Origin: Klebsormidium nitens
Lineage: Eukaryota > Plantae > Klebsormidiophyceae
Length of the DNA stretch: 64,000 nucleotides
Assembly: GCA_000708835.1 (NCBI GenBank)
Contig: DF237166.1
Coordinates: 1-64,000, forward strand
Direction of reading: 5' to 3'
Positions 11,201-31,900 of this stretch are shown one piece after another. A program made the translations under genes and the position numbers. The first letter of the stretch is position 1, and every line of letters starts with the position of its first letter. Under the pieces are notes generated by a model, which was given only the letters and a program-made list of their open reading frames with translations, was not told where the DNA came from and ran no database searches.

Positions 11201-12260
11201 TTCTGAGAGCACGTGCGCCGCCACCTTATTGGTCAACTCGATCGCTTTCAAGACGTCCCCCCGAAGGACGTGTTCGCAAATTGCTGTGGAGAGAAGGTGT
11301 CATTTGAGGCGATGATTCTCAACAACATCCCATGATCAGCACAAAAGGTTACAACAAACAAAACCGATTCTGCTCACAAACCTGTCAGACGCTCCTGTTA
11401 CATCGCTTACTGAGGAACAAGGGTGGTGAGTACTCCAAGTGCCACCTACTCCTTGCAAGCAGAACGTGGAGCAACATATTGCCAGCGATAGGCAACAGAT
11501 AACCTTGCAGTAGTGAAAATGCCAGCACTTTGCTTGACCCGTTTCCTAGACGATTACTGCTAGATCTTGGCAAGCTTTCATCAAGAAGCACCTGATGCAT
11601 CCATGACCAATCCTGCCTGACTAACGCAGCCTTGGAGTAAGTCAGAAGCACTCTGCATTTGACAATTGACTGCCTCACGTTTTCTTGTCTCCATGTCCAG
11701 AATCCGATCTTCGATATCTGGAAGCCCCGCGTCTGACACCAACGTCTGGGCCGTCTCCTTGCAGCACGTGTGCACCAAGTAATCCACCACTATCTCCCTC
11801 ACCTCAGCGTCGTCTATGTCCTGGAACGAAAAAGATGGAGCACACAGCTTTGAGGGATTGCACAACTCATGTAGGGCGCACTGATCAATGTCGGCACACC
11901 TGCGCAGGCGATCTCTGCTTTGATCAATCAACCTCCAGCAAACATCTGCTGAAAGATTACGAAGGGCTTCCAACAATTGGGATCCGTGTAAGAGCAATTT
12001 TCACCAACAGAATGCTGCACACGAACAGTCGAACGTCCACTAGCTTGACCCCAGATTCCTTCAACCAAGAGGATGGAGTACCAATTGTCTCTCAATATTT
12101 TCTTGACTCGGACTTCACGCTTGAGTGGTGCACTGATCAAGCAAGTGGCCCTGGCCTATGGGCAATCAAGCTTGGACAAAAGCTGAGCATTGTATCACCA
12201 TGCGCTCTGCTTTGTTGTTCAACTTACCTCATCTTCATACAGGTTTACGATAGGCTCCAT
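8282..12260 (-). CDS. LisH-CTLH-CRA domain protein (GID8/TWA1/RanBPM-like, At1g06060-like; CTLH E3 ligase complex subunit); last short exon not located
   Basis: Exons: 12260-12228 (MEPIVNLYEDE); 11820-11679 (DIDDAEVREIVVDYLVHTCCKETA, LisH); 11283-11136 (ICEHVLRGDVLKAIELT...FELLALHFI, CTLH); ~10170-10095 (ALHFAREQLKPFGKQERFVERLQ); 9558-9447 (DCMALLAYEEPEKSPMFDLLEDVYRERVAELLNGALL, CRA); 8373-8282 (AHWHMPAQASVEKLIRQAVVVRKVMHQER). All GT-AG with consistent phases. Confidence 0.9.
8328..8860 (-). repeat. Tandem array of 5 copies (108-136 bp period) of the 3' splice site plus first ~50 nt of the 8373-8282 exon
   Basis: The motif ttgcag|CGC(AC)TGG...CCCAxGCGTCxGTCGAGAAGCTCATAC occurs with exon-like starts at 8843, 8733, 8625, 8489 and 8373. 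Only the 8373 copy stays open and reaches a donor. Confidence 0.9.
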
Positions 12261-14426
12261 TGCGGTAGGGTGACTCTACTCAAAATCGAATGCTGTTCGG
12301 AAGCACCCCGAGCTCTTCAACTCCAGCACCAAGGTGCACCAGAGACGCCGCCTTCGGACACATCCGAAGGGCTACCCAGATTGGGTGTGAACTTTGAAGC
12401 CCAGCTCCTTTCAAAGCATCCTGTGCCCAGGTAAACAAAGGCTACATCATACATGTGCGCCAAGGGGAGTGCTTGAAAAGTTTCATGCAAATCGGGTCAC
12501 TGCTAACCTCAATCAGAATCGAAGGACGGTTAACCGCGGGTCTCAGGCTACCGTACGTTGGTACCCTTCTCTAGTTCGAGCTTCTCAGGAACTTTTGCCC
12601 AGTGTGTAGGCTAGGACTCGGCTCTGACTCTCTGAGTCTTGGGTCTAGCTAGGTAGTCTATTAGACTCGAGTCCAGGCCAGACTTTCATCCAGAGCATGC
12701 TACCTATCTACGGTACCTCCCTGGGCCTAGGTATCTTGTCTTCTGCCTTCAAGTTCTGCCTTGTGGGCTGGTGAGCTTGGCTGCAGTTCTCGTCAGTGGC
12801 TTCTCTCAATCGATACAGGGTTGCACTCGCAGCACACCAATCCCTTCGGATGAAGAAGTGAGAAGCAGGGTAGTGTAAGAGTGCAAGCTCCAAAAGGCTG
12901 CTTAGCATCCATCCCCCAAATGTTGCTTTAATGTTGACCGGCGATCCATCCTCTGCGCCGCGTGCATCACCTGACGTGTTGTCCTGGAGTTTACCCCTGT
13001 GCAGTCTAAATGTTCAAACTTTTTCTTGCTGAGTGATCGGAGCTGAGCTCACTTGCATGTGCTGTTGTAAATATTGCCAAGGGTACCACACCTGGCAAGA
13101 CAAGAATCTGCAAGGTGCACTGCCAAGATTGTAAGGTATGTGATCACGACTCTTTTGTTCCTACAATCACTTTAACGAGCTCAAGCCAATGGGGAGTATT
13201 AACCACAATAGGAACCTCTACTAATCACACTTAATTTAATTAGCTGTATGACTGCAATTGGCGGTGTCACCTTTTTTTTGAGGCATCAGCATGCATAAGT
13301 TTTCTTGCTTATCTATTTCTACCTGCAATGACTTGGCATTAGACCAGATGATGGTTTTGATACCAACAGCAACAGACTCGGTTGATGTTGGTAATGCAAA
13401 GGACCAAGAAAGGCTGTGGCGGGGATGACGATGTTGGTTGTGGCCATCCAGCTTGTTATTTCCCACAGGCTCAGAAATACCATTCATATCGGCAGGAGAT
13501 TGGTTCAGTTTTTTACTGCAACTGGACTGCTGTTGCCTTACCTCCTGAGCTTTGCATTGAAAGCGCGGCATATGAATGCTGTGCTACTTGGTGGGGCTGA
13601 AATTCTAGGAATTGGCCCGATACATACCTGCCGTCATTGGCAGCTTACACTCGTTAGGTTAAGCACAGTGTTTGAAAAGAATAGTTCGCGGTCAAGCCAG
13701 TTCAGGCAAACAAAAGAGGGACTCAGTGTAGTCTGGCACCAAAAGATTCTTATACACAAGAAGGAGGCGAGCCTGGAAACTGGACGGGCCAGGTGGTATT
13801 TGCTAACTTTTGCATGCATCGGCAGAATTGATATGCTGCAGGGGCTCGTTTCAGGTGCTTAACATTTCCATCATAGTAGACTTGAGCACACTTTCTTCCT
13901 CTATCTTTTTTGGTAGCCTCCATGTGCTTCAGCGCTTGACAGAACGCTTGGGCTGTTGGAATTTGTCTTGAGAATGCAGAAGATACAGTTTTTCTGGGAG
14001 GTGTCTCCATTCATTATGATTATCCTGCATTCGCAGAGAGGCTGTCGTCTACACAACAGGTTTTTGTATTTTGTCAACGTCCTAGCTACTCCTGCATCAG
14101 CACGCGGGTTCTTTTTTGAGCTCACCGAACGTAGATTGGCACGTTTTAAGAACCTCATTCATTGCGAATTTGTTTTCATCTTTCAGGCGAGGGCAGAGGT
14201 GAGCAGAGGTGACATTGGAAGCGCTTCCTTGTGCAACACTGAACTCTTTTCTTTGAAGAGTTTTGGTTTGGTTGACTTGACCTTTTTGCAGCCTCATTCT
14301 CCTTTTTGGAAGTACAAGAGAGATGTCCGAAGAGCTAATTGCCCTGTCGCTCCTGCAGGTTTTTACCCAGTGCATCCGAGCTTGGCGCGATGATAAGGTG
14401 GAGACCCGCGTGAATATCAGCTGGCA

Positions 14427-22988: not shown

Positions 22989-25900
22989 CTAATCGTCGAT
23001 CTCAATGATTTTCACAACGCTTGAGTCACCTAGCTTTTGGCAGACAACTATCCGGTCATGGATGTGAACCAGCCCCGCTTTGCGGGCGTAGTCGATCGCC
23101 ACCTTGAGGATCGACTCGTTGCTATTTGAGTTCCCGTCAGCCTGCACAATCAATCCGCAATATCTGTGACGCTGGTAATCTAAAGATTAGGGGTCCAGTC
23201 TCAAGCTCTGAGCTTACTTTTCCTAAAGCTTACTACTCCTGATGTTACGACAACCTTATTCATCTGGACCTGCGGAGCGAAAACGTACAGGTTCCCCATT
23301 TCATGCAGCCCTTAGGCCGGCAGTGTGAGTTCATAATAAACCAGAAAAAAACATACCGGGGGACGCTCCTACAACTAGAGAAGGTAGGAAATTCTCACCG
23401 GGTGCCGCGGGTCTGCAAGCATGGGGAATAGCCCACGCATGATGAGGCACTGCCTCGCCTGCGCAACGAGGATCATTGCTGGCGTCAGCATGATGTTAGA
23501 AGCCCGATATTTCCGGAGTCTTGGCTACCCTTCTGGGCGACACTGTGATTGAGCACCAGGCGGTTCTCGTCACCTCAACAACGGTCCAACGATGGAGGTT
23601 GTGAGCTTCCGCTCAAGTCGGACTGGACTTGCAAAGCAGGACGGCATGAGCATCTTTCTATGGCAAGAGAGATTGGGAGGGAGGCGTTAAAGCCCGGTAC
23701 CCAAGACCTGACATCCAAAGCCCGAGCCGGAAAGTTAATGAAAGCGTCCAGATATAGCACAGTCCAGATACGCTACCCTGGAAGGCGCCGGTTAAGGTCC
23801 ATCTGAGGAGAATGGCGGACGGACAAGGAAGCTTCTCATGATAGGGCGAGCCTCTTTGAAGGGAAAGCCTGAAAGGGGAGAAGCTTTGCGGCCCGCGAAT
23901 GTGGGCGCTTTGAATGAAACTGTAACGCCAAAAGCCCCATCTGTTTGGAAGAATGTTGGGGAATTTAAACACTCCTATGGCCCTACGAGCCAAAACCAGG
24001 AGGTGACACCTGGAAAGGCGCCAGTGAACGTCAAACCGAGTTCGTTGGTCAGCTTGGAGATGGCCACAAATCTAAAGGTTCCAAATCTCGGTAAAACCCT
24101 AGAAGAGTCGATACCTGGAAGGCGCCAGTGGACGTCCACTTGAGCGGGTTGGTGGTGAGTTTGGGGATAACCACGTTTGGAAAACCTGAAGGTTCCAGAT
24201 CTTGGCAGCCTGGAAACCCAAAACTCTCAAGTTAACAAAATGCTAGAAGACTCAATACCTGGAAGGCGCCAGTGAACGTCCACTTAAGCTGGTTGGTCGT
24301 GAGCTTGGGAATAACGACGGTGAGAACCGGCATGTCGGGGCGGTACTTGGCGATCAACCGGGCGGCACGCCCCGAGGAAGAGAAGACAATGATGACGGAC
24401 GCCTTGATTTTGGCGGCCGCGCGCACCTGCGGGGGGGGACACGTGGCAGCGTGTGAGGCGTGGACGGGGTCAGAGAAGATGCGTGTAGCGCATGAGCGTT
24501 CCGGTCTGAGAACTCGTGTCGCAGTAGAAACGGGCCTGTTCAAGATCCTGCTGGAGACAAAGAAAAACCTGGTTCCTGTCCGACCGGGAATCAACTTGCG
24601 ATGTTTAGCGTTTTAGGGTTTTAGGGTTTTACTGGACAGAGAGCACAGGGCCGTGTCAGGTCGGAAAAATAGTGTAAAAGGCGAGAACAGGAAGATCAAG
24701 AACCCCCGAAGCAAAGGGACGGCGCGTGAGCCCCCGCCAGTTCAGAAAGCGCGCAAATAATGAATCTGCATGATCTTCAAGTGCTTGCCTTAATCCTGGC
24801 GACAAGTGAATTGTCAGACCCCTACATTCGACATTCCGTGGTCTGATGCTCGCTGAAAGTAGGTCCCTTTGAAGCGCAGCTTGGATAGGGGTGGAGGCCA
24901 TATTGAGCTATCCGCAGTTGCCGCTTCGCCTCTCTTCCCCGCACCAGACCTTCATCTTTCTTTCATTTTCCCGCGGCCAACTTCCGATACAGCGTGCCAA
25001 AACACCCTTGCGGAACGGCTCACAATGTGCTAGGGGAAGGGACACGTGTCAGCAAAGAAGCGAGCAGTGACTCACTGCGGAGGACGCGATGGACTCCATT
25101 TGGCTCATTGGCACGCCGACCTCCTTGACTATCCTCTTGAAGTACAAGTTGTGGTTGTACACGTTCTCAGCCTGCGGGAGAAATGCAAGTACGTCTCAAC
25201 CTAGTGAATACGACAAGCTCAGCAACCAAAAAGCTCGACCTAAGTAAGATCCTAGACAACAAGTTTACACCTCTGGAGTCCGCACCCGCACTCAGTCCCC
25301 TGACTAATACTACTCGTTCTCATTCTGCATGGAACTTATTGTTCGCTGCGTCGATTGGTAACGCAAGGCTTAGGGTCAACGCTGAAACAGAGGGTGCGGT
25401 TTTCATTTCAACTGTCCTATAGCAAGCGGCGGAGCGAAACTTCCGCCCTGTAAATCATTGATGAGTTAACAGAGCTGTGTCGTGCTGAACTCCGATGAAG
25501 ACTGTATTGCGACAAGACTCTGCTGGTGCAAAACCCGACACGCCACATCAAAAGAAGCTTCCGAAGGAGTGCCAAAGTCGAGTTCGAAAACTTGCATGAC
25601 TTGAACTTGCACCGTTCGAATTCAACAATTGGACGTCTCGTCTTTCAAAATCGATTCCTGAAGGCCGCAAATGTCTTCAAATGTCTCAAGCGCGAGCGCA
25701 CAGAGCGCCAACACGCCTCCAAAACTTACCTCTGCGCAGATCTTCCTGACTGTGATCACGGTTTCGACTGGGTACAGCCCCCGCAGAGTCTCGGCACCCA
25801 ACATGATTGCATCACAACCTGCAGAACCAGTCGTTGGGGTTAGTGGACTCGATTTTGGCTTATGGAGAACAGATCTTTGAGCCGTGATCACGCTTTCCAC

Positions 25901-28900
25901 TGGGTATAGCACCCGGAATTTCAGCACCCAACATGATTGCAACCCACTTTAAAGGAGTCAGGCACATAAACTCAAGTTAGACGGAAAAAAGCTGATGGCT
26001 GTAGACGTCATGACGGCCGCTCAAGTCACCAACTCTCTAGGGCCGAGAGTTGATTAGTGATCATGGTCAGTGGTTAGTTGGAATGGTGCCTCACTTGTTC
26101 AATCAGTTGCAAAGGGCAAAGCTTTTAAGTGTACTCGAAATGCAACCTAAACTAGACGGGAACTTTTGCAACTCAGCGGTCCGGATTTGATAACGGAACA
26201 CAAGCCCGTCCAGTCTGCTTACATCCTGGCAACGCAGGGCACCTCGCCAACCAACCGTGTCGTCACAATCGGAACCCGCTCAGAAGCTACACAGTTGGCA
26301 GAATAGCAGCATCCAGCACCGAAATGTGGGGCACTTTTGAGGGGTTCGAAAGAGCGATGTTTCTCCAACGCGCACTGACAAGAAAGAAAAAGCGAGAATG
26401 GAGTATTTGAAGCAGTCAGCTCTATCTAGTATCGGTATCAGCTGGGAACCGAGTATCTTGAAAGCAAGTTGAGGTTACCAATCAATTTGTTCCCAACACT
26501 ATAATGATCCAAGTTACCTTAGAAAGCGGCCATCCATGAGACCAGAAAACCAGGATAGGAAAACCCTTAACAGTACGAAAATTCGGTGCCACTCACCATC
26601 CAACACGGCGTTCGCGACGTCGGTCGCCTCTGCGCGCGTCGGCCGGGGCGTGTCTGTCATGGTGTCAACGACACGGGTGACGATGCACGGCTTGCCGGCC
26701 ATGTTGCACCGGTGGATGGCCAGCTTTTGAAACAGGAACACCTGGGCCAGGAATGAACTAGTATGAGCAGGCTGAGAGATTTGGGCTGGGCTGGAGCAGG
26801 GTGACAGGGTGGACGATTTGAGGTAGATTTTGGGCGGAAGTTCAAATTTGAGGTGGGGAAGTTCATCCTCCGTTTTGACGCTGCAACACAAGTGAGGTGG
26901 TGTAACCCATCTCAAAGCTCCGTAAAAAATTCTCAGATGGAAATCTTTCGGATGTAAAGCAGCGAGCCTTTTTGGGCTAAAGATCGGATAACCAGTGGTC
27001 GGTAACTCCAAACAACCGAAGCGGATCAAATAGGGCAGATGAGCACCTTCGAGGCTGGTGCGCACTTCTTCGAGATTACACCGTGACCAGCGTATGAACA
27101 GACGAGTCACAGCAAAGATAATCTGGGCGTCCTGAGGACGAGAGCTCTTGGATCAACAGCGTGCAGAGATTCTCAGTGATCAGGAATTGGTCTTCCACAG
27201 ACACAACCACGCAGACCCTGAAAAATCACAGCGTAAGGGGCACAGAGCGCAACCATAATCTGTTTCCATTGTTTGGCCCAAGTACGCCACAATCCACCGC
27301 ATTACGCACACACAAGAAGCAAAGTCTGTTTCAACGCCAAAGCAGACCCAAGACGTGAGTACAGTTTGCCCAGTCATCTGCAATGAAATTAGAAAGTCTG
27401 TTTCGAAGCGGATCTACGAGCACTCAAGAGTTCCGCCCAGCAACGCACCGTCTCGGGAGGGACATCGATGCCCAGGTTCCCGCGCCCGAGGATGATGCCG
27501 TCAGCCGCAGCCAGGATCTCGTCAAAGTTGCGCAGGCCCTAGGTTAAGCGAGGGTTTAACAGAGGGTTAAGCGAGGGAGAGAGGCGGAGGCTCAGGAAAG
27601 CGCGGCGCGCATACCTTTTCGGGGGGCAAATCGATTCCGAGATTGCCCCGCGACAGAATGATCCCGTCGGCCTCCGCGAGGATCTTGTCGAAGTTCGAGA
27701 GGCCCTGTCAAGCACGCGCATCGCGAAAAGAGAGGCGTGACTCCACGATGCAATGAGATGCAGGGCGGAGGTCTGAGCAAGACAAAGAAACAAACGGGGC
27801 GCGGGAAAAGGAGCCGGCGAAAAGGGATTGACTGCCTTTGGCTCGTAGACTGACGGCCAATCAGCAGTGAGGAACTGCAGATACCTTGACATCCACTAAC
27901 TTGACGACGTCTAACAAAGGCCTAGAGTCTAGAGTGATGCGGGGCTGAGCATTTTTTGTGGAGAGTTGAGAAAGGAAACCTTTCGAGTTCCCCAAACTCC
28001 GTTGCTAGCAGATTAGGTTGACCCGCCAGATCTACCGTGCTGCTGTGAGTATATTCTTTTGAACCCGTGCTATGGCCTCTTTGAGATGCAAAATGTGCGC
28101 AGTGATTGGAACGACCGTGGAGCAAACAGTTTCCTATGGCAGGACGCGCTGGAATAACTGCTCTCCGAGCATCCATTCAAGCAATTGGGAAAAGGCCAGC
28201 TAAGATGGAAAAGTCGAAAACTAGTACTACATCCTGAACCCCGACACGTTGAAACTAACCCCGTGCAAATCTGATGTGTGGCCGCCTCCTCGCTTGGCCA
28301 CCGCCAGATCTTACAGAAGCTCTCTCCTCACCTCGATGTTCTCAATCTTTGCGAGCACCTGAGTCTGTCTCAATTCTCCGCACTTCTCGAGGTGGTCACG
28401 GCACTGCAGGGGGTTCAGTCGGCCAATCTAGTTAGTCAGGGCTGTGCGAGGATCCTAGATTCTAAGTCCCTCACCTCCAGGGTCTCGATCTTTGCAAGCA
28501 CGTGGGTCTGGTACAGTTCCCCGCATTTGGAAAGGTGTTCCCGACACTGCACGTGCGCGCACGACGTCAGCAGGGCTGTCTGCCACCTTGGCACGTGCCT
28601 GCTGCGTCAGCGTGACTGTCACCAACATGGGCCTTGCCATTAACGATGAGTTAAGGCGGTGACCACATTCCGGTTTGCAAAGCCAACACCTCAAACGAGC
28701 TAGAAAGTAAACGAATCAGCCCCGGTTGCCAAAGGCCATGTTTGCACTGCGTCAGCATACACCAAACGTGCCGACGAGGCTTTCCGAAGTGCTTTATGGT
28801 ACCACAGCACTGGCGTGCGTCAAAAGCATCCTTCAAAAGCATTCTCTTTGGGAGTTGGACAAGATTTAGCTCAACGCAATTCGGGGACCGAGCAGTGAAA

Positions 28901-31900
28901 TACGATCGAAGACACCCCCAAAGCGACAGCAGACTTCTTACAAAGCTCGACCAAGTTGTTTGGAGTGCTACCAGTCCACACTGGACCAAGCTTCGATGTT
29001 CTCAACAGAAAGGTCGTTCAGCACGAAGTCTCGGCTTCTGAGGGCTGGCAAGTAGCAGAGCTGTTTGTTCTATCCGTCACCCCGAATTAGTGCATATAGC
29101 CCCTCGAAACAGGCTTAGAAAAGAAGCTGCACTCCTGGGATCACAAAGCCCACTCCACTCACGTTTTTGACGTCCTCCGCCGTGCGCGTGAACGACAACG
29201 ACACGAAGTCAATCTGGTTGGCCTGCCCCCACGTGGAGATGTTCTTCTTGTCCTCCTCGCTCAGCGTTGGAAGGTCCACGCGCACGCACGCCGTGTGCGC
29301 CGTCAGCAGCGCGCCCTGCAGCGTTGCGTCGTTCTTGCACACCCCGATGACGTCATCCCCGCGCACCTCCTCGACCTCGAGCCACACCGACGTCGTCTCG
29401 CTGCCGGTGAAGAGGTACTGCCCGACGAAGATCGTGTCGCCCTTCTTGACGGTCTGCAAAGGGAGGGGGCATCGTTTGAGAGACCATCGATTGCGTTCCT
29501 TCTCCCGCCGCTTCGTCCTTCTCCGCTTCTTTTAATACAGTGTGAATGTTAGCATACCTTCTTCTGCGAGATTCCTCTTTCTTTGCTTCCATCTGATTTG
29601 AAATCATCTCTCTTGCTCCACCCCACCGACTTTTCTCCAACCGCAGTGCGAATACGCCTCCCGCTTCCTTGCCCACAGCGATCGTGCAGGATTTCCTGAC
29701 GTTTCCTGTCACCTAACAAATTTTTCTGCACATGACATGGATGGATGCGCCACAGCAACGAGGAGTCTTTGGGGCAATGAGAGGCATGGTATGATGCTGA
29801 AATGTTTTGTAGAGAAGGATTAGAAGTGGTCCATGGTAAAACGTCTCACCTTGGCAAGGCCCGGGTAATTTGTTGGAAGGATGGCTGCTGATGCCGCCTT
29901 TGTTTTGTCAGGCGTGAGCATGATGGTCTGTCCCGACGTCACCTGAAGGGGGCCTTCGTTGCTGTTGTAAATCTGGAGCTCGGGGCCGACCGTGTCGAAC
30001 ATAACCTGCAGCAGTTCCAAATGGGGAATGAGAGAAGGATCAAACATAACCTTGCAGCAGTAAGGGTTGGGTTCATACACGGACCAAACATCAACACGCA
30101 GCAAATACATGTCAAGGTTAGATTACGAATCACAACGTGGACCTTGCGCCAGACGTTGGTTCGAGTAACCAAGCTCGGCGCTTCGATGTGGATTCCAGAA
30201 TGACCAAAGAGGATTACAGGATGATACTGGATCAATCTGCAAATGTTCGATTTGAGCGTGTGAACATACATTCCGAGCAATTCGGAGGGAGAGGTAGCCG
30301 ATGGGGTTGGACAAGCTTTCTTTGGAGGAAACGGATGTACCGAACAGCTGAAAAGGTACTGCATAACCAAGTTGCAACCTTGCACATTCGCCGACCTTTT
30401 TTTAAAAAGAAAGAAACGAGATTCTCCTTTGAATTGTGGTAAGGAAGTCGGAGACTGTGAATGTCATCGTCATTCATGGCAGAAGGAAGAGTTGCCTCAT
30501 CTTTGACCGCCACTCTTGCAAAAGCATTTAGATTCTCCTTTGGATATGGACAGGGCACTCACGGAGCAGAGGCGTTTAGTGGTTTTGACAGCGGCCTTGA
30601 GATTCTCCAAAGTCTCCTGGTGGTAGGCAGCATCGCCTGAGCTGAAGTCGAACCGAGCAACTGAGAGGACAGCACAACAACTCAGTGAGAACAGAGCGGA
30701 GCGAGCAGTCAAAACGCCGTACACAGAAGCGAGCCAGCCTAAAGGGCGGGGGTTTTGTCTTCATCCAAACGGGGGGGGTCATGTAGCTTTTATGAAGCAG
30801 TTACCACATGGCTGCATGCTTGCGGTGGTTCCTTGCTATTTTGACGCAAAGGTTCAACCTACATCAATCAAGCTGGCAGCAATCTTCAACCCGGTTGTTT
30901 GCATTAGAAAGGGCTCGGACAAGTGGTGGCCCCCAACCTATCCTTCTTAGTGCCAAGCATGGTTATCGCTGACCACCCTAAAAAAAGAAGCAGGAACAGA
31001 GACAATCTGTCTGCATGGTAGCTCTTCCTCGCTATCCGCCTGCCTTAAAAGGTGTTTGACGAAGCTTCTCAAGCGCTTGCATGGCCAGGAATCTTTACTT
31101 TGCCACTTGGATGATGGACACTCCATTTCAACAATCAAACGCTGTTTGTCAGAATGACAATCGCAGATGATTGCAAGGGCTACATTGGGTCTTACCTGAC
31201 ATGCCTGCATTTAACAGCTCCTCGATCTTCTCTACTGAACGTGACTCATTGCCAACAGTCGCGATGATTTTGGTCTGTGCCACGTAAGCGTGGGGCAGAT
31301 TCTGCACAAGACAGGAGCGATCGAAAGTCAGGGCTGACCTGGTGAGGGAGAGGGGAGACGCCCTGTGCTTGTCTGACTGGAAACAGAACAGTGGGAAAAC
31401 TGGGAGGGCAACCTTTTCCATTCAGGGAGGTGATGATCTAAAGTGGTGTACGCCGAAAGTTCGCTTGATGACATCAGGATTGAGAAGGTCAGTGCAGTAC
31501 TTCACTGCGCAAAGCAAGAGAGTTTCTTCGGCTGAAGTGCTAGCGGTAGGTTCAGATGCATGAGACAATAAAGCAATGGCGTTTGATTGATTGAAAATAG
31601 GGCCCGAACCTCAGAACGTGACATTTCGAGAACATCCAAAAGTCAACACACACCATGGTACTAAAAGAGATCTGAATGTTGCAGAACTTTTTCTCCTCTA
31701 GATTTTCTAAATGCCCCACGCATGGGATTTACCACTCTGAGGGTCCGAACATCTCATCAAAACGAGACCTGCCCATAAATATGTGGCACTGATGTACTTT
31801 CTCTCTCCTTTCCGACGATGTTTTCCAGAAGGCTTTGGGTACAGGTTACTGAAGCGAGTACCATCAACCAAGTCAGGATGAGATATCACGAAGAAGTTTC

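Follow-up and report, generated by a model that had tools for sequence, protein, structure and literature searches.

Two tandem exon duplications at the active site of a pyruvate kinase gene in Klebsormidium nitens: a mutually exclusive pair and a conserved candidate pair

Results

A cytosolic pyruvate kinase gene with two duplicated exon pairs

The window analysed is a 64,000-nt stretch of the genome of Klebsormidium nitens, a streptophyte alga (assembly GCA_000708835.1, contig DF237166.1, positions 1 to 64,000). It carries a pyruvate kinase (PK) gene of the cytosolic plant type, and all features given below lie on the minus strand. The public protein P0240 ('pyruvate kinase [Klebsormidium nitens]') contains the PF00224 barrel and the PF02887 C-terminal domain. 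Alignment of a homolog with PDB pyruvate kinases (E=3e-81) placed KIExxEG...RGDLG in register, and a 14-residue motif of the K. nitens PK is common to land-plant homologs. The domains, together with the KIE and RG(D/N)LG motifs, assign the enzyme to the plant cytosolic RGNLG clade.

Between the constitutive exons 4 and 7 lie two pairs of similar exons. Exon 4 (29163..29455), which covers the B-domain and ends in phase 0, is followed by exon A (28475..28546) and exon B (28332..28403), each of 72 nt and 24 aa. Exon C (27615..27704) and exon D (27449..27538), each of 90 nt and 30 aa, come next, and exon 7 (26597..26741) provides an acceptor common to C and D. The A/B segment contains the catalytic Lys and the metal-binding Glu (KIE), and the C/D segment contains the RG(N)LG substrate/metal loop. 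The register with the PDB enzymes bore out an earlier note, made from the sequence alone, which had placed the four exons at these active-site segments; every number that it gave for exon positions, lengths, difference counts, borders and intron sizes was also reproduced.

A and B differ at 20 nt and 6 aa, with nine synonymous changes in the 18 conserved codons (18/24 aa shared), and C and D differ at 25 nt and 6 aa, with 15 synonymous changes in 24 conserved codons (24/30 aa shared). The copies are spaced 143 nt (A/B) and 166 nt (C/D) apart, and an independent repeat search recovered the A/B copy at the spacing of 143. Neither stops nor indels were found in any of the four exons. All are in phase 0 with AG|..|GT borders: CAG|..|GTGAGG for both A and B, CAG|..|GTATGC for C and TAG|..|GTGCGT for D. 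The two pairs thus have the equal length, shared phase, splice sites and homology of tandem-duplicated exon clusters. Nei-Gojobori dN/dS of the paralogs was 0.13 (A/B) and 0.07 (C/D), dS being saturated; these ratios are far from the expectation for decaying copies.

The introns within the pairs are short. The A-B intron (28404..28474) is 71 nt long and the C-D intron (27539..27614) is 76 nt long; they are 5-15 times shorter than the remaining introns of the gene (390-940 nt). The C-D intron holds three tandem copies of a branch-point-like motif, CTCGCTTAACC (TRF: period 11, 3.2 copies). The B-C intron (27705..28331), the A-B intron and B jointly make up the 770-nt intron from A to C. The K. 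flaccidum genome paper gives no intron statistics in its main text.

The gene also contains a younger duplicate, E', of the following exon, E, at ~25941-25870. It shows ~15% mismatches to E in the aligned part and three indels, which break its reading, and it is without a GT donor. Because E' is already broken, it serves as an internal control for the intactness of the kept exon copies.

C and D are alternative exons in the mRNA

Splice joints were read from assembled RNA contigs of three runs (X1, X2 and X13), not from reads. Every listed joint of the clusters had GT..AG ends exactly at the predicted borders. Exon 4 was spliced to exon A (29163 to 28546) at depths of 133-281 in the three runs (173 in X1, 133 in X2 and 281 in X13; the same order is used below). 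The A-to-D joint had depths of 77, 113 and 197, and the D-to-exon 7 joint 130, 113 and 197. The A-to-C joint had depths of 40, 50 and 0 and the C-to-exon 7 joint 80, 85 and 0, none being listed in X13; the shorter side of these joints was only 26-27 nt. Position 26741 was the acceptor end of both downstream joints, the one from 27615 and the one from 27449. A 1207-nt contig of X13 represented A-D-7-8-9-10 with 0 mismatches. Some RNA contigs of paralogous PK genes cross-mapped on a short conserved stretch, giving an odd joint from 24351 to 26608 and loose ends near 26604-26649.

No joint from C to D, from A to B, from A to exon 7, from exon 4 to B or from B to any exon was listed among the contigs of the three runs; contigs lose rare variants, so the missing B, C-to-D and A-to-B joints are weak evidence of absence. 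C and D are mutually exclusive in the mRNA and form a genuine pair of this kind: exactly one member was present per mature mRNA, as seen in contigs, with rarer forms possible. The A-D form was the major mRNA. The A-C form made up between about one quarter and one third of the spliced forms in two studies and was not assembled in the third; the C:D ratio thus varied between data sets. In the A/B pair, only joints from exon 4 to A were seen, with none at B, and B is under coding constraint (see below). We regard A/B as a conserved candidate pair in which A is the default member.

The earlier note had proposed mutually exclusive splicing of both pairs, up to four enzymes and B+C as the standard form. 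The proposal stands for C/D, with A-to-C, A-to-D, C-to-exon 7 and D-to-exon 7 joints and neither a C-to-D nor an A-to-exon 7 joint; the use of B found no joint in its favour. Two forms, A-D and A-C, were seen in RNA rather than four, and the main mRNA is the derived A+D combination.

The public annotation follows the major form. P0240 is exactly the A-D form, in which residues 241-264 correspond to exon A and residues 265-294 to exon D, and exons B and C are missing from the annotation.

Unspliced RNA was also found. A contig covering 27677-28503 (827 nt, 0 mismatches) ran from the end of A through the A-B intron, B and the B-C intron to the start of C, and it passed through B without a graph branch. 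The A-to-C intron was retained in about one fifth of transcripts. The unspliced A-to-C unitig had depths of 42 and 40, versus 5 for the intron between D and exon 7, and the depths of the A-to-C joint and the retained form summed to that of the C-to-exon 7 joint. In transcripts in which C has already been joined to exon 7, the A-to-C intron may be detained, being removed slowly.

Searches for exon B in RNA and protein fragments

We used a word search with the A-B intron, B and 100 nt of the B-C intron, in which a run containing B alone was expected at a share near 0.2. The B-only pattern was absent from 20 RNA runs. The shares recorded were 1.0, 0.89, 0.85, 0.78, 0.59, 0.37 and 0.30, all compatible with partial intron retention. 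In X20, from a close relative or strain with ~2-8% intron divergence, A and part of B were present.

A contig end at 28360 in X13 was considered as a branch at the B donor. It matches the k=31 arithmetic, which also fits the A donor (28503) and the C acceptor (27677). This reading of 28360 was dropped, as the words found in X13 were those of 28232-28360 only, the 5' part of B being absent.

A 64-aa query composed of the exon 4 tail, B and C had no K. nitens match among the protein fragments derived from Logan/JGI, and all matches were land-plant fragments of no more than 86% identity. Fragments of the known A-C form were likewise unmatched, and thus the protein-fragment search is uninformative for B.

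Conservation of the four exons in a related species

The locus was compared with L001, a metagenome contig from one related species, on which the counterparts A', B', C' and D' are all intact, in phase 0, in the same order and with AG/GT borders; E' is absent from it. The introns of the two loci align almost nowhere by blastn. The counterpart of the A-B intron is 82 nt long and has 63% identity to it (random 100-mers: 48%), and that of the C-D intron is 58 nt long.

Differences between orthologous exons were mostly at third codon positions, and orthologous dN/dS was 0.09 for A, 0.15 for B, 0.28 for C and 0.10 for D. These values, from a single relative, indicate that both members of each pair have been retained by selection. 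By these substitution patterns, purifying selection acts on both copies of each pair, as the earlier note had suggested. Synonymous divergence per site was 0.24 in C+D, versus 0.575 in the constitutive exons (2.4-fold, p=2.5e-5) and 0.52 in A+B; exon C alone had a low dS of 0.28.

The residues that distinguish the copies are the same in both species: T versus N in KIE(T/N), S versus G before RGNLG and K versus T/S at the end. A is thus of the KIET type and B of the KIEN type, and C (LSRGNLG..PPEK) is distinguished from D (LGRGNLG..PPET). The C and D enzymes differ at about six residues; one of these precedes R-G-N and is Ser in C but Gly in D, and another is the final position of PPE(K/T). A metagenome scan with exon-4 alignment yielded 80 land-plant and other loci, all distant (54-71% identity), and in these each exon occurs only once and is of the B or C type. 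This agrees with the earlier view of B and C as land-plant-like. By this comparison, B and C are the ancestral types and A and D are derived. Representative and region searches, as well as the metagenome scan, gave no further Klebsormidiophyceae relative beyond L001.

The comparison bears directly on the status of exon B. Between B and its ortholog, 16 of the 72 nt differ, 11 of them at third codon positions (Fisher p=0.0016); dS is about 1 and dN/dS 0.15, there is no indel or stop, and both AG and GT are retained. This constraint is found between introns that cannot be aligned with those of L001, and B has kept the ancestral KIEN motif in both species, whereas the younger copy E' is already broken. 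It argues against B being a dead relic, that is, a silent pseudo-exon in the A-to-C intron in which decay has not yet set in, with C/D as the one working pair. Such a relic would be consistent with the missing B joints in three runs, the unspliced contig that crosses B without a graph branch, the absence of B from P0240 and the lack of a B-only word pattern in 20 RNA runs. We consider this explanation unlikely.

Exon C might instead be included by splicing noise, with D as the sole functional exon and the A-C mRNAs as by-products without a role. The annotation has D only, and X13, whose assembled mRNA contig is of the A-D form, lists neither an A-to-C nor a C-to-exon 7 joint. However, the share of the A-C form was substantial in two independent studies (between about one quarter and one third), C is intact in L001 with dN/dS of 0.28, its type is ancestral and occurs in all land-plant homologs, and the unusually low synonymous divergence is shared by both C and D. 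These observations make splicing noise an improbable account of C.

A collapse of two paralogous genes or haplotypes into one locus, which the earlier note had named as a possible refutation, has a negligible chance of being correct, given that mismatch-free RNA-run contigs (the 827-nt contig) cover A, B and the start of C with their introns, that spliced contigs match the locus with 0 mismatches and that an independent metagenome contig of another species has the identical four-exon layout.

A predicted helix beside exon C

RNAfold and RNAalifold predicted a helix flanking exon C. Its 5' arm (27710..27725) lies just upstream of the exon C acceptor, in one of the few intron stretches alignable with L001, and its 3' arm (27601..27616) covers the exon C 5' splice site (AG|GUAUGCGCG). 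The helix consists of 11 bp, a mismatch and 4 bp in K. nitens, and of 16 bp at the same place in L001. The arms are among the only intron sequences conserved between the two loci, but they are GC-rich and partly self-complementary and overlap splice signals that would be conserved regardless. Two one-sided changes preserve the pairing between the species, with no double compensatory change. The duplex energy was in the top 3% of random places in the K. nitens window and in the top 0.5% in L001; flank-duplex energies around A and B were ordinary.

The predicted helix suggests how the choice may be made. When it is closed, C would be hidden and A would be joined to D; when it is open, C would be used. 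At 71 and 76 nt (82 and 58 nt in L001), the within-pair introns are probably below the spliceable size, so that the members of a pair would not be joined to each other; the removal of either intron was never seen, as no A-to-B or C-to-D joint was listed.

Two other means of enforcement were considered. Both 72 and 90 are multiples of 3, and thus the reading frame cannot enforce exclusivity; no enforcement by frame or NMD was found. Neither was U2/U12 incompatibility, as none of the four donors fits the U12-type consensus (/[AG]TATCCTT).

Discussion

These results point to two old tandem exon duplications, A/B and C/D, in the K. nitens PK gene, in which C/D works as a mutually exclusive pair, A is the default, and B would be used only in a condition or stage outside those sampled. 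We give this reading a probability of roughly 0.72. The use of B is inferred from the conservation of both A/B copies and the presence of only A in all RNA examined. Each mature mRNA would contain A and then either D (major) or C (minor), never both and never neither, and both A/B copies would have been retained as protein code since before the two species split.

A bolder version, which we regard as possible but rather doubtful, is that both clusters are used in combination, with B switched in by a stage or stress outside the public RNA data. The gene would then give up to four PKs with differing active-site chemistry, and it might be the first transcript-proven case of tandem-duplicated mutually exclusive exons occurring genome-wide in a streptophyte alga.

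Whether or not B is used in this way, a working C/D pair invites comparison with known systems. In animals, the mutually exclusive splicing of duplicated exons has been documented well, and the PKM1/PKM2 switch is its textbook example. To our knowledge, such splicing has hitherto been regarded as essentially animal. The vertebrate PKM1/PKM2 pair (exons 9/10) resembles the K. nitens exons in that it belongs to the same enzyme family, consists of adjacent homologous exons of equal length, has one member chosen per mRNA and yields isozymes from one gene. The segment encoded by the PKM exons belongs to the C-domain, at the subunit interface and FBP-activation site, and the choice between these exons depends on hnRNP and PTB repressors. 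In contrast, the K. nitens exons encode A-domain active-site strands (KIE, RG(N)LG), form two neighbouring clusters instead of one and have an independent origin.

Other tandem-duplicated clusters of animals (tropomyosin exons 2/3, Dscam, 14-3-3 zeta and ion-channel exons) are alike in length, phase and homology; K. nitens differs from them in lineage, being a streptophyte alga. Short within-cluster introns, as in the K. nitens PK, are the basis of the steric-block model for tropomyosin. Structure-controlled mutually exclusive clusters have been reviewed (PMC6071210), and they likewise have conserved intronic RNA pairing beside the regulated exon. However, the helix predicted in K. nitens would loop out one exon and cover its donor, unlike the competition between docking site and selector sequences in the animal clusters.

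In plants, mutually exclusive duplicated exons are known almost solely as predictions (PMC3923563). The Arabidopsis candidates of Kassiopeia, which their authors call preliminary, were selected by the same properties of length, frame and similarity, also in the plant lineage, and there are almost no documented internal cases (PMC3923563). Unlike these candidates, the K. nitens C/D pair is backed by transcripts of both members and is conserved in a second species. Our literature search found no case in a plant or algal pyruvate kinase and none in Klebsormidium.

The public annotation has the A-D protein only, and therefore present proteomes of this model alga include neither the A-C enzyme nor exon B. 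With its two exons, 76-nt intron and 16-nt helix, the locus is a compact and testable system for studying the enforcement of exclusivity in the green lineage. The K. nitens PK resembles a convergent use of the PKM-type switch to tune a key glycolytic step, acting at the catalytic strands instead of the allosteric interface.

The gene carries two pairs of tandemly duplicated exons

Stop-free stretches of the minus-strand gene, from ~31300 to ~23000, together encode a complete cytosolic pyruvate kinase of the plant type. Between constitutive exons 4 and 7 lie two 72-nt exons, A (28546-28475) and B (28403-28332), followed by two 90-nt exons, C (27704-27615) and D (27538-27449), all on the minus strand and in phase 0, with AG/GT borders and no stop or indel. 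A and B lie 71 nt apart and show 20 nucleotide and 6 amino-acid differences, and their 18 conserved codons contain 9 synonymous changes. C and D lie 76 nt apart and show 25 nucleotide and 6 amino-acid differences, and their 24 conserved codons contain 15 synonymous changes. Every position, length, border, phase and difference count in the earlier note was reproduced, and the A/B copy was recovered independently by a repeat search. Between the paralogous copies, dS was saturated and dN/dS (Nei-Gojobori) was 0.13 in the A/B pair and 0.07 in the C/D pair.

Used as the query of a region search, a full-length homolog recovered P0240, a 530-aa protein with domains PF00224 and PF02887, named 'pyruvate kinase [Klebsormidium nitens]' by NCBI and UniProt. 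Its sequence matched exons 1-4, A, D and 7-12 of the window exactly, indicating that the public annotation contains the A-D isoform alone; exons B and C fall within an annotated intron. A homolog aligned to solved pyruvate kinases (E=3e-81) with KIExxEG...RGDLG in register. As established for the rabbit and human enzymes, the KIE Lys is the catalytic Lys, the KIE Glu a Mg2+ ligand and the RGDLG Asp the second Mg2+ ligand. This Asp position is occupied by Asn (RGNLG; P0240 residues 283-287, exons C and D) in this protein and all its land-plant homologs; Asn occurs throughout the plant clade of this enzyme, and the metal-binding Asp in other pyruvate kinases.

All four exons are conserved in a related species

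An exon-4 fragment search identified P0001, which is 92% identical and was called as a gene on a JGI metagenome contig of 107.5 kb. A 20-kb piece of this contig (L001) served as the sole relative in the comparison. By blastn, its exons were 77-90% identical to those of the window, and introns were almost wholly unaligned. L001 contained intact orthologs with AG/GT borders of all four exons: A' (11424-11495), B' (11578-11649), C' (12449-12538) and D' (12597-12686), with intra-pair introns of 82 nt (A'-B') and 58 nt (C'-D'). Each exon was nearest its own ortholog; therefore, both duplications are older than the split of the two species. The type residues were preserved in both: KIET(L) in A, KIEN(I/V) in B, LSRGNLG..PPEK in C and LGRGNLG..PPE(T/S) in D.

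Orthologous dN/dS was 0.09 for A (dS 0.81), 0.15 for B (dS 1.02), 0.28 for C (dS 0.28) and 0.10 for D (dS 0.30). Eleven of the 16 differences between B and B' were at third codon positions and one was at a second position, a synonymous excess (Fisher p=0.0016). These values, together with the intact exons of L001, bore out the proposal that both copies of each pair are under purifying selection: the gene underwent two tandem exon duplications, and all four copies are under coding constraint.

A metagenome scan (mosses, angiosperms, metatranscriptomes) yielded 80 loci with 54-71% identity in exon 4, each with the duplicated exons in single copy. KIEN was present in 33 of 37 distinct sequences from these loci, the Ser preceding RGNLG in 23/24 and the terminal Lys of PPEK in 21/24. 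Since B- and C-type residues dominate single-copy loci, B and C are ancestral and A and D derived, in agreement with the earlier view of B and C as land-plant-like.

Transcripts contain either C or D

We placed Logan contigs of four public RNA runs on 23700-29650: X1 and X2 (two studies of organism A), X13 (organism B label) and X20 (organism C). Being contigs and not reads, they show presence but not absence. Splice evidence came from three runs, with GT..AG ends exactly at the predicted borders in all of the following joints. Depths in X1/X2/X13 were 173/133/281 for exon 4 to A, 77/113/197 for A to D, 40/50/0 for A to C, 130/113/197 for D to exon 7 and 80/85/0 for C to exon 7; joints of the downstream constitutive introns were also present. 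A 1207-nt X13 contig read A-D-7-8-9-10 with zero mismatches. Joints C to D, A to B, A to exon 7, exon 4 to B and B to anything were all missing among the RNA-run contigs.

Because C and D joints were present and C to D and A to exon 7 joints were not, C and D are used either/or: in contigs of three runs, the mRNA takes one of them, neither both nor none. Mutual exclusivity, proposed for both pairs, thus held for C/D; for A/B only A joints were seen and none with B, A being the default in each run examined. The main mRNA was A-D instead of the B+C form expected as standard. In X1 and X2, roughly one quarter to one third of the spliced forms were A-C; this form was absent from the X13 assembly, indicating that the C:D ratio varies among the data sets.

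One unspliced unitig (27677-28503, depth ~42) covered the end of A, all of B and the start of C. It ended exactly at the k=31 branch points of the A donor and C acceptor and had no graph branch at the B borders. The depths of the A to C joint (40/50) and this unitig (42/40) together accounted for the C to exon 7 joint (80/85), indicating that in ~1/5 of transcripts C is already joined to exon 7 with the A-C intron still present. We infer that this is a slowly removed (detained) intron of C-committed transcripts. Contig depth over the A-C intron (27705-28474, minus) was ~42, versus 5 for the D-exon 7 intron and 26 for the exon 4-A intron, and RNAs retaining it had C already spliced to exon 7.

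RNA contigs, a fragment search and a word search gave no evidence of exon B in mature RNA; the fragment search was uninformative, and every pattern in the word search, which was aimed at B-only holders, fits intron retention. A contig end at 28360, considered as a branch at the B donor, was dropped as the word data gave it no backing.

Other copies in the gene

A decayed tandem copy, E' (minus, about 25870-25941), lies ~130 nt upstream of E (25818-25730), the next constitutive exon. Where the two align, E' mismatches E at ~15% of positions; it also carries three indels that disrupt the frame, lacks a GT donor and takes part in no joint among the RNA contigs. E' is missing from L001 and is therefore younger. 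E' serves as a control within the window: unused copies decay quickly in this gene, and B is undecayed.

The 3' end of exon 10 has three partial echoes in the following intron (minus; 24093-24182, 24015-24050 and 23777-23818), used by no spliced RNA contig. The first matches exon 10 at 84% of 90 nt, with the terminal CAG/GTAT intact; L001 also has one echo. A short repeat resembling telomeric sequence, (TTTAGGGT)3.5 on the plus strand, lies in the exon 9-10 intron at 24604-24631, and an organism C depth of ~268 over 24496-24694 indicates repeated sequence in that data set. All RNA runs showed a non-canonical joint, 24351 to 26608 (GA..CG), and several high-depth loose ends at 26604-26649, which look like paralogous pyruvate kinase transcripts cross-mapping on a conserved stretch.

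Possible control of the C/D choice

Both exon lengths, 72 and 90 nt, are divisible by 3, so frame shifts followed by nonsense-mediated decay cannot give exclusivity; nor, given the donors GTGAGG, GTGAGG, GTATGC and GTGCGT (of A, B, C and D in turn), can U12-type sites. The intra-pair introns measure 58-82 nt across the two species, versus 390-940 nt for all other introns of the gene, which fits a steric block on joining pair members.

Regulated alternative exons are known to be marked by lowered synonymous divergence. Between the window and L001, synonymous divergence per synonymous site was 0.575 (166/289) in constitutive exons, 0.52 in A+B and 0.24 (11/45.7) in C+D (Fisher p=2.5e-5). Only ~35 nt before C and both ends of the C-D intron were alignable intron sequence. 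RNAfold predicted a helix on the minus strand between 27725-27710, before the C acceptor, and the C donor region at 27616-27601 (AG/GUAUGCGCG), with 11 bp, a mismatch and 4 bp in the window and an uninterrupted 16 bp at the corresponding position of L001; RNAalifold kept the 11-bp core. Pairs were preserved through two one-sided changes, with no double compensatory change between the two species. Compared with random places, the flank-duplex energy ranked within the top 3% in the window and within the top 0.5% in L001. The predicted helix is suggestive, not proof, of a C/D regulator, because its arms are GC-rich, partly self-complementary and overlap splice signals. When formed, it would mask the C donor and leave exon C in a loop, which would favour D; when open, C would be usable and D would then be skipped, the 76-nt intron not being removable. 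The C-D intron also contains a branch-point-like 11-mer, CTCGCTTAACC (gene strand), in 3.2 tandem copies (27542-27577); L001 has a single copy immediately before the D' acceptor.

Relation to known systems

The isoforms differ beside active-site residues, with T or N following the metal-binding Glu and S or G preceding Arg-Gly-Asn, and a reasonable guess is that they may differ in metal or PEP kinetics. C/D belongs to the known class of mutually exclusive exons arising from tandem duplication. PKM1/PKM2 is a convergent case in the same enzyme, but the Klebsormidium nitens exons, unlike those of PKM1/PKM2, encode catalytic strands. In full-text literature searches, mutually exclusive exons turned up neither for a pyruvate kinase of plants or algae nor for Klebsormidium, and the Kassiopeia paper (PMC3923563) states that such splicing has hardly been documented in plants. 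What makes the case notable is the lineage, the enzyme and the presence of two adjacent clusters.
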